A stretch of DNA of 64,000 bases from Rebecca billardiae RCC1528 (taxonomy: Eukaryota > Protista > Haptophyta): assembly GCA_965240325.2 (NCBI GenBank), contig OZ251251.1, positions 806,001 through 870,000 on the forward strand. The letters are read 5' to 3'. Position numbers and translations under genes: made by a program. The notes below the pieces were generated by a model that saw only the letters and a program-made list of their open reading frames with translations, was not told the DNA's origin and did not search any database. Shown in pieces: positions 39,288 through 47,806 of the stretch. Numbering within the stretch: the stretch's first letter is position 1; each line of letters begins with the position of its first letter.

Positions 39288-39781
39288 ATGGGGCGGCCGG
39301 TGAGCGTGCAGCTGAACGGCACGCAGCATGTCGTCGCGGTCGAGGCCGTCGACGCGCGCACGCCGCTCGCCACCGTCATCGCGCACGTGAGCGCGCGCGC
39401 AGAGCACCTGGCGCCGCGCGCGGGCGGCGCGGCCGACGGCGGCGCGGTGAGCGTGCCGGCGTGCGAGCTGCGCACGCTGCGCGGCGAGGTGGTGCGCTCG
39501 GCGAGGCAGCTCCTCGACGAGCGCGTCGTCCTCTTCTGCCGCGCGGGCGAGCCCTTCGCGCCGCTGCCGCTCCCGCCGTGGCACCCGGAGCGCGGCGCGC
39601 ACGAGGCGAGACTACGCGCGCCGCCGCCGCCGCCGCCGCCGAGCGCGGCGGCGGCGGGCGGCGGCGGCGGCGGCGGCGTGGTGAGCACGACGCAGGCCTA
39701 CTACGCCGGCGGCGCGCCCGCGCCGCACGCCGGCTCGCCGCAGCCGCACTCCCCGGTGAGCGGCGGCGGCGGCGGCGGCTT

Positions 39782-39812
<31 letters not shown>

Positions 39813-40562
39813 CCGAGCGCGTGCGAGCGGCTGGCGACGACGGCGACGGCGTCGTGGGCGAACCGCGCGGCGCGGCGCACGCTCACCACCGGCTCGGCCG
39901 GCTCGCCGGGCTCGCCCACCCACCGCCCGCCCTCCTCCCCCTCCACCGCCGCCGCGGCGCGCCTGCCGGCCGAGGCGGCGGCGCCGCCGCCGCGCGCCGG
40001 CGGCGCGCGCGCGCCGGCCGGCGGCGGCGGGCCTGCGGCGGGCGGCTGGGCGAATGGGGCGGCGCGCGCGCCGCCGCGCGAGGCATGGGCGGCGGGCGGT
40101 GCCGGCGGCGACGCGCTTGACTCGACCCACGCCGCCGCCGACGCCGCCGCCGGCCCCGCCGCCGCCGCGGCCGCCGCGGCGGACGCGGCGGCGGCGCGAG
40201 CGTTCGCGGGCGCGCTCGAAGCGTCCTATGGCGCCGACGGCCGTTACGCCGAGGGCCGTTACGCCGAGGGGCGCTCGGCGGCACGCTCCGCGCGGCCCGC
40301 GGCCGAGCCGTCGGCGGCGCGGCGCGCGTCGGCCAAGCCGCGCGCCGCCGCGCTGCCGCCGGGCGGCGGCGGCGGCGGCGGCGGCGCGGCGCCGCCGCCG
40401 CCGCGACGCGCCGACACGGCGCCGAACGTGAGCGGCGTCGGGGGCGGGCGCCGCGCGCTCTCGCCCCAGCCCGACGGCGCGCGCGCCGCCGATGTCGTCG
40501 TCGCGACGAGCGCGCACGCCGCCGCCGTCGCCACCATCGCCGCGCGCGCGGGCGGCGCGCGA

Positions 40563-40600
<38 letters not shown>

Positions 40601-44398: not shown

Positions 44399-44459
<61 letters not shown>

Positions 44460-45097
44460 AGCGCGGGCGCTGGGGCGCTGGCCACGCCGCGCGGCGGCGG
44501 CGGCGGCTTCGGTGGCGCCGAGGAGGTGGAGGAGGAGGCGGAGGACGAGGACGCGGGGCTGTCCGAGGCGTCGCGCCGCCGGCGCAAGCTCGAGCGCTAT
44601 GAATGTGCGCCACCGCAACCGCCCACGCGCCGCCGCGCGCCCATGCGCGGCGCGCGCCCGCGCGCGCCGCCGGCCGCGTACCGCGCGCAGCGCGCGCCGC
44701 CGGCGGCGCGCGCGCAGCCGCGCCGCGCCGCGCGGTGTGAGCCGCGCCGCGCGTCTGCGCGCGCCCTTCCCCCGGCGCGGCGCGTGCGCAGCCGAGCTCT
44801 CCCCCGTGACGCCCTACCTGGCCGTCTCGGGCGCCGCCTCCGCCGCCTCCTGGGACGCGCTGAGCGGCGTGGGCGTCAGCCATGTGGTCAACTGCGCGCG
44901 CATGGTGTGCCCGAACGCCTTCGAGGCGGAGGGCGCGCAGGGGGCGGCGGGGGGGCGGGCGCTGCGCTACCTCTCGCTCTGGCTGCTCGACAGGCCGTCC
45001 GGTGCGCGCGCGAGCGCGCACGCCGCGGCACGCGCGCCCAGCCCCGCGCCTCGCGCGCGCGCTTGCGCCCGCCTGAGCGCGCGCCCGCGCCCGCGCG

Positions 45098-45132
<35 letters not shown>

Positions 45133-47806
45133 GCGCGCCCCTGCGTGCATGGCGGTGCGCGTGGCGATGCGCGGGGCGCAGAGGACATCTCGGCGGTGTT
45201 GTACGACGCGTGCGCCTTCATCGACGCCGCGCGCGCGCAGGGCGGCTGCACGCTCGTCCACTGCCACCAGGTGCGGCCGCGGCAGCCGCGCCGGCGCACG
45301 CGCGCCGCCCGCGCGCCGCGCGCCGCCGCGCCGCGCCGCGCCGCGCGCCGACCGCGCGTGGCGGCGCCCGCGCCCCCGCCGGTGCGCGCGCAGGGCGTCT
45401 CGCGCTCGGTGACGGTGGCGGCGGCCTATTTGATGTGGCGCGAGGGGCTGTCCCACGCGCAGGCGGCGGCGCTCCTCAAGGCGCGCCGCCCCATCGCCTC
45501 GCCCAACATTGGTGCGCACGCGCCGCGCCGCGCACGCGCCGCGCCGCGCCGCGCCGCCGCGGAGCGCCCGCCACCGCGCCAGCGCGCACGCGCCACCGCC
45601 AGAGCGTGCGGCGCGCACGGCCGCGCGCGCGCCTCCGCGCCGCGGGCTGTGCTGTGCGCGGCGCGCGCGCTCACGCCGCGCCCCCGCCGCCCCCCCCTCA
45701 GGCTTCACCGTCGCGCTCCTGCGCTGGGAGCGTCGGCTGCTGGCGGCGCGCGCGCACGGGCACGCGCGCCCACGGGATGGCGGCAGCGCGGCCGCGCTCA
45801 CGGCGGGCGTGGCGCACGCGCCGGCGCTGGGCGCGGAGGACGAGGCGGCGCGCACGGCGCAGGCGCTGGCGCACACGCCGCGCCTCGAGCTGTACCGCGT
45901 CGTCGCCTCCGCCTACGCCCTGGACGGCGACCCGCCGCGCGCCGCCGCCGTCGACACCACCGCGCCCGCCGCCGCGCGCGACGGCGGCGCGGGCGCGGCC
46001 GCCGCGAGTGTGCTGAGCGCGGAGGCGGTGCACGTGCTCGCAGGGCGGCGCGACGGCGTGTTCATCTGGTGCGACCGACGCGCGCCGCGCGCGCGTGCCC
46101 ACCGCGCCGCGCACGGCGCGCGCGCTGACGCCCGCGCGCCGCGCCGCTGCCGCCGCGCCGCTGCCGCCGCGCCGCTGCCGCCGCGCCTCTGCCGCAGGGC
46201 GGGCCCTGACTTGGCGCCGGCCGAGCGCGGCGCGCTGCTGTGCGCGGCCGCGCGCTTCTGCGACCACCTGCACGGCTTCGAGGGCTACCCGCTGCCGCGC
46301 GCCGGGGCGGAGGAGCCGTTGCCGCCGCCGCCCGCAGGCGACGGCGCCGGTGCCGCCGCGCCCGCCGCTGCGGTGCGTGTGGTGCAAGGCGCGCCGTCCG
46401 ATGTGGCGGTGGCGGCGGGCGCGGAGGGCGGCGGGGCCGAGGCGCCGGTGGGCGGCGCGCGGCCCGGCGCGGCCGAGTTCCTCGCCGCGCTGCGCCAGCT
46501 GCTGCGCGAGGCGCGCGGCGGCGGCGGCGGCGGCGACGACGGTGCGGGTGGCGGCGCGGCGCCGCCGCCGCCCGGCGCCGCCGCCGCCGCCGCCGCCAAC
46601 GCCGACGGCGCCGACGATGGCGGCGCCGCCGCGGCCGCCGCGGCGGCCGCGCCGTCCGCGCCGGCGCGTCGCGCGTCGCAGGGCCAACTGAGCGTGCTGC
46701 TGGGCGGCGCGCTCGCCGAGGCGGACGAGCTCGCCGCCGCCACCGCCACCGCCTCCGCCGAGGCCACCCCGCGCTGGCTCCGGGTCGGGCTGCTGGACGG
46801 CGGTGCGGGCGGCGGCGCGGCCGCGGCCGCACCGCTCTCGCCGCGCGTGCGCGCGAGGCCGCGCGCGCCGCCGCCGCCGCCGCGCGCGGCGGGGCCCGAG
46901 CGCTCCGCCGCCGAGCTCGGCGCCCTCCGCGCCTCGCTGCTGCAGCAGGACCGGCCGGGCGCCGTCCCGCCGCCGCTCACCGCGGGCGCAAGGCCGGGCG
47001 GGCTCGCCGCCAGGCTGGGCGCGCTCGCGGACGCCACGGGCGGCGCGGGTGGCGGGGGCGGTCCCGGCGGCGGGGGCGGCGGCGGGGCGGTGCTGCCGCC
47101 GCCGGTGCTCGCGCACTCGGACGCGAGCGCGCACCTCGCTGCGCCGCCCGACACCTCGTGGTTCGCGCAGATGCTCGCGGGCGGCGGCGGCGGCGGCGGA
47201 GGCGGAGGCGGCGGCGGCGGCGGCGGCGGCGGTGACGGTGGCGGGGGCGCCGCGCGTGTGTTTGGCAGCGCGCGCGGCTTCGCCGCCGTCCAGAGCGACA
47301 GCGAGGCGGAGGCGGAGGCGGAGGGCGGCAGCGCGCACGAGAGCGAGGGCTCGGAGGACGCGGCGGGCGCGCAGCCAGCGCCGCACCGCAGCGAGCAGTA
47401 CAGCGCAGACGGCAGCGGGGACGGCAGCGCCGACGGCAGCGAGGGCGGCAGCGGCGCAGACGGCAGCGAGGGCGGCAGCGGGGGCGGCAGTGCCACCGAG
47501 GAGGAGGGGGGCGAGGAGGAGGACGCCAGCGAGGGCGACGAGGAGGACGCCGAGTACGCTGCGCTCAGGCGGCTGCACGAGCAGAGTGCAGGGCACGCAG
47601 GGCACGCAGGGCACGCAGCCCAGCCTGGAGCGGAGGCTGAAGCCGCTCAAGCCATCGCTCAAGCGCACGCAGCAGCAGGGGCGGCGCCTGCACCCACGGG
47701 GGGCGCAGCGGCGCTGGCTGCGCGCCCGGAGGCGGAGGAGGCGGCCGAGGACGTCCTCGACGAGGACGACGACGACGATGGAGTCGTCTACGGCTCCAAC
47801 TACTGA
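39288..47806 (+). CDS. ~2423-aa multidomain protein: DCX-like N-terminus, coiled coil, Pin1-type parvulin PPIase, MKP1-like dual-specificity phosphatase, gelsolin-like segment; 8 exons (39288-42419, 42688-42829, 43000-44604, 44792-45001, 45182-45270, 45394-45511, 45702-46068, 46198-47806)
   Basis: VRARHLLVKHAASRNPVSRR...[65 protein letters not shown]...LVHCHQ|GVSRS...AYLMWREG...ASPNI|GF; all seven introns are GT-AG; summed exon length 7272 nt, in frame. Confidence 0.85.

Follow-up and report, generated by a model that had tools for sequence, protein, structure and literature searches.

A single gene of the haptophyte Rebecca billardiae RCC1528 appears to encode both a Pin1-type prolyl isomerase (parvulin) and a phosphatase resembling the mitogen-activated protein kinase (MAPK) phosphatase MKP1. 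The locus lies on the + strand at 39288-47806 of a 64,000-nucleotide (nt) stretch of contig OZ251251.1 (assembly GCA_965240325.2, positions 806,001 to 870,000), which we call the window and from whose first letter all coordinates are counted. Reading the DNA and comparing it with homologues, we favour, with some reserve, a single fused gene of eight exons (E1 to E8; Table 1). The exon coordinates total 7,272 nt, that is 2,423 codons and a TGA stop, in agreement with the 2,423-amino-acid (aa) product of a preliminary description made from the letters of the window. The sequence strings quoted in that description were all located where it had placed them. Exon boundaries were set by visual inspection and by alignment to P0001, the nearest protein to the phosphatase part, which derives from a transcript of the haptophyte Pavlovales sp. 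CCMP2436; the product length is coordinate arithmetic. Profile, homology and fold searches were run exon by exon.

The isomerase and phosphatase domains

The parvulin is divided over three exons, and the three pieces are collinear with TbPin1, Pin1, and Ess1. E1 ends at 42419 with ...IVRARHLLVKHAASRNPVSRRTG...RGE. The phase-1 junction between E2 and E3 gives ...QLS-E-IVETP, which is collinear with the ends of Pin1-type enzymes. Pfam Rotamase (PF00639) matches E2 alone with an E value of 9.2e-07 (30.2 bits against a cut-off of 21.7). The top solved relative found with phmmer is TbPin1 (PDB ID: 2LJ4; E 7.4e-12 for E2 and 6.2e-12 for the E1 part), followed by Ess1 and Pin1. The phosphate-binding loop reads KHAASRNPVSRR. 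In this loop the equivalents of Lys63 and Arg68 of human Pin1 (hPin1) are kept and that of Arg69 is replaced by Asn; the loop segment SRNPVSRRTG is identical in TbPin1. Equivalents of the active-site residues His59, Cys113, Ser154, and His157 are all present (RARH, SDC, and PSGLH). The parvulin has no WW domain. A Pin1/Ess1-type loop without a WW domain is what the preliminary description had reported, and the Rotamase match, the resemblance to TbPin1, Ess1, and Pin1, and the intact catalytic set bear it out. TbPin1, which also carries Asn at the Arg69 position, has a phosphorylation-dependent activity and rescues the loss of Ess1 (PMC3416822). Judged by its residues, the domain is a complete Pin1-type parvulin of the TbPin1 class, for which we predict phospho-dependent peptidyl-prolyl isomerase activity.

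The second catalytic part, E4 to E7 and the start of E8, is by homology an MKP1-type dual-specificity phosphatase (DSP) with a gelsolin-like segment. Pfam DSPc (PF00782) matches the DSP exons with an E value of 6.9e-13. E4 reaches the general-acid loop (LWLLDRPS), in which the general-acid Asp is present, and is 57% identical to P0001 residues 131-206. The catalytic site HCHQ/GVSRS is intact and is split across the junction of E5 and E6, so the MKP1-like DSP with this signature stands as first described. E6 gives a DSPc match at residues 294-334 of the open reading frame (ORF) that holds the DSP exons, and aligns to P0001 residues 237-276. The motif GFTVALLRWERR in E7 was matched by hhalign to an alignment of 44 MKP1-like proteins (E 1.6e-4). 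A tblastn search of P0001 residues 265-650 against the window gave an E value of 6e-27. From its family membership, this half of the protein would be expected to dephosphorylate a MAP kinase.

The string VFIWAG, previously called gelsolin-like, straddles the junction of E7 and E8 (VFIW/AGPDL...FEG). With the gelsolin region of the MKP1-like alignment, hhalign gives the corresponding part of P0001 a match probability of 95.9%, and this part of P0001 aligns to the window. When the E8 piece was compared directly, the hhalign probability was only 0.14%. Pfam gave no Gelsolin match on E7 and E8, and no match to MPK1_gelsolin_C was found there. The string is thus in place, and its gelsolin character is suggested transitively, through the homologue P0001, and not by a direct match.

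Continuity of the gene and its relatives

Whether the two domains belong to one gene depends on E3. In the parvulin frame this exon has no stop over 43000-44604, and its only in-frame ATG, at 44352, is downstream of a conserved block at 43875-44051. A separate MKP gene would therefore require an unseen upstream exon, and a separate parvulin gene, whose frame meets no stop, would require an unseen intron. Stops are rare in this genome, so the open frame alone proves little. Coding character was scored with a codon model trained on other exons of the window, with three exons withheld from training. In the parvulin frame (frame 0), the eight 201-nt blocks of E3 reach between +0.25 and +1.14 bits per codon; in the other two frames all are negative. 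The linker that follows the parvulin (43047-43874) has +0.43 to +1.04 bits per codon in frame 0. The held-out exons score +0.66 to +1.01. Every exon has a positive score in its correct frame, and the seven introns and the two intergenic flanks score below zero in all three frames. The frame-specific GC content at third codon positions (GC3) of the exons is 0.93-0.98. There are 25 dips in the window in which GC falls below 62% over 200 nt, and around the locus they occur only at 39001-39200 and 47901-48650. The stop-free run from the last parvulin exon into the DSP, on which the preliminary description had relied, is thus open and coding-like throughout.

Homologues extend this evidence downstream. 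The 44604/44792 junction is confirmed by P0001 (KLSRYEGELSTV versus KLERYE-S-ELSPV), and the conserved block and the C-terminus also match this transcript-derived protein. In contig L001 of a related genome, neither a stop nor an ATG interrupts the frame ahead of the conserved block back to the contig start, over at least 110 codons. These alignments suggest that the block belongs to the MKP-like half. It contains a basic-x-Phe-x-Leu pattern resembling a MAPK docking motif, and a docking role (D-motif-like, from the basic-x-Phi-x-Phi pattern) is possible. The block closes a linker of approximately 520 aa between parvulin and phosphatase, which is probably disordered over 43047-43874.

Several observations weigh against a single gene. 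The initial Met of P0001 lies 27 residues ahead of the conserved block. There may thus be a stand-alone MKP-like protein in Pavlovales sp. CCMP2436, an internal start could be used here, and the fusion may be lineage-specific. The chance of an accidental open frame of 534 codons is approximately 4%, estimated from the 3-4 stops per other frame over 1.8 kb. Five donor-like and many acceptor-like motifs are found within E3, and a cryptic intron is conceivable. The training set of the codon model is low-complexity sequence that is compositionally like the linker. The two domains came up together in no other protein or locus, so that selection for keeping the fusion is not indicated. The single chain proposed at the outset is therefore carried by an open, coding-like E3 with no start ahead of the block, no stop and no GC dip, and by a junction confirmed in a homologue, and is called into question by the Met of P0001 and the donor-like motifs of E3.

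The leading alternative, which we regard as somewhat unlikely, is that two (or three) same-strand tandem genes look like one owing to the scarcity of stops, ATGs, and AT-rich spacers at 83% GC. The parvulin gene would then end soon after 43046, through an unrecognised short intron shifting it to a stop-containing frame. The MKP-like gene would begin with an unrecognised first exon that uses another frame, e.g. from the ATG at 43231 or the one at 43315, and joins frame 0 by splicing ahead of 43875. Such an arrangement would agree with the position of the Met of P0001 just upstream of the conserved block and with an architecture that our searches found nowhere else. Donor-like motifs are present at 43242, 43246, 43375, and 43498, with acceptor-like motifs downstream. 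The GC3 periodicity is weakest at 43050-43500, and E3 does contain out-of-frame ATGs and stops. However, across 43002-44603 each block, those at 43203-43604 among them, has a positive score in frame 0 and in no other frame, whereas genuine introns and intergenic DNA are negative. No internal GC dip resembles those on both flanks, and frame 1 from 43231 is Arg-rich out-of-frame text that meets a stop at 43885. Two extra unsupported introns, together with a promoter inside DNA of >80% GC, would be needed.

A single locus with mainly separate products is very unlikely. On this view, an internal promoter or ATG 44352 yields a short isoform of the MKP, with the long fusion as a minor or non-functional read-through. 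Position 44352 is the only in-frame ATG of E3, and the median length of stand-alone MKP1-like proteins is approximately 575 aa, but a start at this position loses the 43875-44051 block, which is conserved in three pavlovophycean sequences, and the coding signal is unbroken upstream of it.

The fused gene has no counterpart among the sequences searched. P0001 returned 16,759 matches in a full HMMER search. The best 150 MKP1-like representatives of these, and 47 further cluster members, contain nothing resembling the parvulin exons. The 44 representatives with at least 150 residues ahead of the DSP carry Gelsolin, MPK1_gelsolin_C, EF-hand, LisH, and other domains, and no Rotamase. Among 80 MKP1-like metagenome loci, none has a parvulin within 10 kb; the metagenome scan, made with a single protein, returned only distant MKP1-like loci of 35-44% identity. 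A word search with the first parvulin exon, among proteins of 629-2002 aa, found none at E <=0.01, the 50-aa region having little power against 5.8 billion sequences. With the second parvulin exon, among proteins of 246-782 aa, none was found at E <=1, again with little power. Gene models from this genome surfaced in none of the searches, and exact look-ups with the E1 ORF and with P0001 returned no contig. We found no paper on a parvulin-DSP fusion in the literature. The contigs of relatives, L001 (1,638 nt) and L082 (1,363 nt), end before any parvulin could appear. As far as searched, the pairing of a parvulin with an MKP1-type phosphatase is thus new, and it is seen in one genome. The preliminary description had also recognised no such architecture, and the lack of a parvulin in the 150 closest MKP1-like representatives and beside the 80 metagenome loci agrees with it. 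Genes of more than 80% GC have stop-free introns and spacers, which makes fusion calls risky; transcript proof is needed before the locus enters databases as a new architecture.

L001 and L082 (ENA ERZ4290864; Logan SRR12334356) come from a related genome of 72% GC, which has the same MKP-like gene with different intron positions. An intron is located inside the conserved FTL...HTxLPL block and there is none at the RYE/ELS junction. Upstream, the frame in this genome encodes an acidic EADGEEE repeat, and the assembly breaks there.

Gene structure and accessory regions

Table 1. Exons and predicted protein features of the locus, in window coordinates.
Feature	Position	Strand	Content or basis
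Exon 1 (E1)	39288-42419	+	N-terminal domain, long low-complexity part, start of parvulin
Exon 2 (E2)	42688-42829	+	Parvulin core; splice sites assigned
Exon 3 (E3)	43000-44604	+	1,605 nt; end of parvulin, linker, conserved block, helix preceding DSP
Exon 4 (E4)	44792-45001	+	First part of DSP domain
Exon 5 (E5)	45182-45270	+	Ends VHCHQ, first half of catalytic loop
Exon 6 (E6)	45394-45511	+	GVSRS..., second half of catalytic loop and last DSP helices
Exon 7 (E7)	45702-46068	+	MKP1-family motif, first half of gelsolin-like segment (...VFIW)
Exon 8 (E8)	46198-47806	+	Second half of gelsolin-like segment (AGPDLAPAERGALL...FEG), long Ala/Gly-rich tail, conserved C-terminal ..YGSNY, TGA
Predicted ubiquitin-like beta-grasp domain, ~90 aa	39288-39560	+	AlphaFold, VIA-align, ESM features
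Remainder of E1, ~900 aa, Ala/Gly/Pro/Arg-rich, low complexity	39561-42272	+	GC3 0.90-0.98 in frame
Parvulin part 1, end of E1	42273-42419	+	Strand beta1, phosphate-binding loop KHAASRNPVSRRTG, helix 1
Parvulin core, E2	42688-42829	+	Catalytic Cys (SDC), Met, Phe; PFEEAAF region
Last parvulin strand, start of E3	43000-43046	+	Active-site Ser and His
Linker, first part of E3, Gly/Ala/Ser/Asp/Glu/Pro-rich	43047-43874	+	No in-frame stop or ATG; GC >=71% per 100 nt
Conserved block (...RRARALGTFTLALRRPAEIV..AHTNLPL..SPKPSPRRPP)	43875-44051	+	Aligns to P0001 residues 15-74 and contig L001
End of E3 up to ...SEASRRRRKLERYE, helix preceding DSP in MKP1-type proteins	44052-44604	+	P0001 110-129 versus 44544-44603

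All seven introns are 123-268 nt long and 84-94% GC, have GTG[CT]G donors and [CG]CAG acceptors, and their phases close; the donor of E3 is GTGCGCC at 44605. The ATG at 39288 is the sole in-frame ATG of E1 and is preceded by in-frame stops at 39012, 39036, and 39117. The stop codon of E8 is at 47804-47806, directly before a GC dip. GC content at the locus is 77-88% per 2 kb, and the dips between genes reach 50-67%. The published genome of Diacronema lutheri has 73.25% GC (PMC8379373), consistent with the composition of the window; the same paper describes three strand-specific RNA libraries of that species.

Three of the introns (45002-45181, 45271-45393, and 46069-46197) are 180, 123, and 129 nt long, multiples of three, and are stop-free in frame, so that all DSP exons fall within a single ORF of 538 aa (44512-46128). 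ORF-style gene callers would run through these introns, and their retention would preserve the frame. E1 has 1,044 codons, in which the initiator is the only Met, and the 534 codons of E3 include a single Met. Approximately 60-70% of each of these exons is accounted for by Ala, Gly, Pro, and Arg. A (Gly-Ser)n run at 43726-43790, encoded by GGCAGC repeats, produces eleven evenly spaced acceptor-like CAG motifs within E3.

The N-terminus had been described as DCX-like (doublecortin) and as a possible microtubule tether. AlphaFold, run without an alignment, gives residues 1-110 a beta-beta-alpha-beta-beta layout with a predicted local distance difference test (pLDDT) score of 62. VIA-align of this model retrieves ubiquitin-like domains only, with kindlin F0 (Z 7.0), the N-terminal domain of Par3 (Par3-NTD; 6.2), and the ubiquitin-like (Ubl) domain of USP7 (6.1) among them. 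DCX domains have Z scores of 5.0-5.5, beneath kindlin F0 and Par3-NTD and beside USP7 Ubl, RA, and PB1. ESM features point to ubiquitin-clan families, with Par3/HAL N-terminal at the top (0.89). Foldseek gave no match for the model at E <=0.001. In Pfam, residues 1-110 match no family, DCX included, up to E 10, and DCX has no match on the whole of exon 1. From the model, the N-terminus is a generic ubiquitin-like beta-grasp module and not specifically doublecortin; it perhaps serves oligomerisation or partner binding. We rejected doublecortin as a specific assignment, given the missing Pfam match and the ranking of DCX folds under other beta-grasp domains; only a single copy of the domain is present. 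The string quoted for it is present, but with no DCX profile and no DCX-specific fold match the tether to microtubules loses its basis.

Beyond this domain, E1 has no stop and no second ATG in frame over 39561-42272, where 15 Ser/Thr-Pro sites are found. Helical, coiled-coil-like stretches are seen at approximately 41088-41480, with weak matches to coiled-coil families (E 0.08-0.9). At the other end of the protein, the C-terminal tail (47000-47806) and P0001 residues 600-651 share the islands PDTSW.., ARPGGL, and a final ..YGSN amid unalignable Gly/Ala runs. These islands may be short linear motifs.

The upstream neighbour (37820-38923, + strand), an ORF of 367 aa whose end is 365 nt short of the ATG at 39288, has hydrophobic stretches, a GC3 of 0.95, and no Pfam match at E 10. 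An Rfam search of the window found no RNA families. ORFs on the minus strand across the locus were rejected as GC-driven antisense frames, as codon position 2 has the lowest GC when the + strand is read.

Possible mechanism and comparison with known systems

MKP-type phosphatases act on the pThr-x-pTyr of MAPK activation loops; the pThr there is followed by Pro in TPY-type MAP kinases only. The target of Pin1-type parvulins is pSer/pThr-Pro, which is also the mark written by MAPKs. The model protein has 28 Ser/Thr-Pro sites. The most economical reading of a fused enzyme may be a MAPK feedback module, which we infer to be more likely than strict isomerisation followed by dephosphorylation. The kinase would dock and phosphorylate Ser/Thr-Pro sites on the scaffold or nearby. 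The tethered parvulin would read or isomerise the pSer/pThr-Pro sites written by proline-directed kinases such as this MAP kinase; candidates are its own 28 sites, neighbouring substrates, or a TPY-type activation loop. The phosphatase half would inactivate the kinase. Parvulin action could then tune the phosphatase that switches the kinase off, giving built-in feedback that couples kinase output to its shut-off.

In the stricter version that had been put forward, the gene is indeed a fusion, the bond isomerised by the parvulin is the same pThr-Pro bond at which phosphate is then hydrolysed, and the N-terminus tethers the enzyme to microtubules. We consider this combination quite improbable. 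Both catalytic centres look intact, and there is a functional precedent for coupling isomerisation to dephosphorylation in Ess1/Pin1 with Ssu72, where dephosphorylation of the C-terminal domain is isomer-specific. These are two separate proteins, and Ssu72 is a Ser phosphatase resembling low-molecular-weight protein tyrosine phosphatases, not an MKP. For both activities to meet at one residue, a loop of the Thr-Pro-Tyr type would be required. JNK-type kinases carry such a loop, but MKP1 is known from plant-type systems with TEY or TDY loops. The microtubule part has against it the generic fold of the single N-terminal domain, with DCX tied among many and no Pfam DCX match.

The broader proposal, that a single-chain Pin1-type isomerase and MKP1-type phosphatase act in the same MAP-kinase pathway, and maybe on the same pThr-Pro-pTyr loop, is unlikely as it stands. 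Its interest is that Pin1-type isomerases and MAPK phosphatases, both downstream of proline-directed kinases, are known as separate proteins, and that by domain-fusion logic a natural fusion argues that both activities serve the same pathway. The fusion would give a compact system for asking whether prolyl isomerisation gates or tunes MAPK shut-off. If the two activities do share a pathway, the enzyme would be a hard-wired test case for isomer-gated dephosphorylation, and the fusion would predict a functional link between Pin1 and MKP in other eukaryotes.

Among known systems, the single-domain TbPin1 from Trypanosoma brucei (PDB ID: 2LJ4) is the closest to the isomerase, and like the plant Pin1At-type parvulins it also lacks a WW domain. 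Its phosphate-binding loop agrees in length and sequence with that of the protein described here, with Asn at the position of hPin1 Arg69, and the same His/Cys/Ser/His set is present. In contrast to TbPin1, which is a free protein of 115 aa, the domain here occupies approximately residues 996-1108 of the 2,423-aa model, is interrupted by two introns, and continues after its last strand without a stop.

The phosphatase part shares HCxxGxxRS, the LWLxDxPxEDI acid loop, and the GFxxxLLxWxKR motif after the domain with plant and algal MKP1-type phosphatases (DSPc, Gelsolin, and MPK1_gelsolin_C). The gelsolin-like segment is at the same place, but in the protein described here it is too diverged for Pfam. 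The N-terminal block and the ..YGSN end are clade-specific and are common only to the Pavlovales sequences.

The plant proteins AtPin3 and TaPar32 join a parvulin to a C-terminal partner from the broader phosphatase-like (Cdc25/rhodanese) group (PMC9797600). Their partner domain is rhodanese-like and not a DSP, and the proteins are approximately 300 aa long. To our knowledge, their parvulin is not of the Pin1 loop type. Known multi-domain parvulins comprise WW-Pin1, FHA-Par42, and the plant parvulin-rhodanese proteins (PMC3416822, PMC9797600). TbPar42 (FHA-parvulin) and WW-Pin1/Ess1 also combine a parvulin with a phospho-dependent partner in one chain (PMC3416822; PMC6468809). In those proteins the partner binds phosphopeptides and is N-terminal, whereas in the gene model from R. 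billardiae it is a C-terminal phosphatase.

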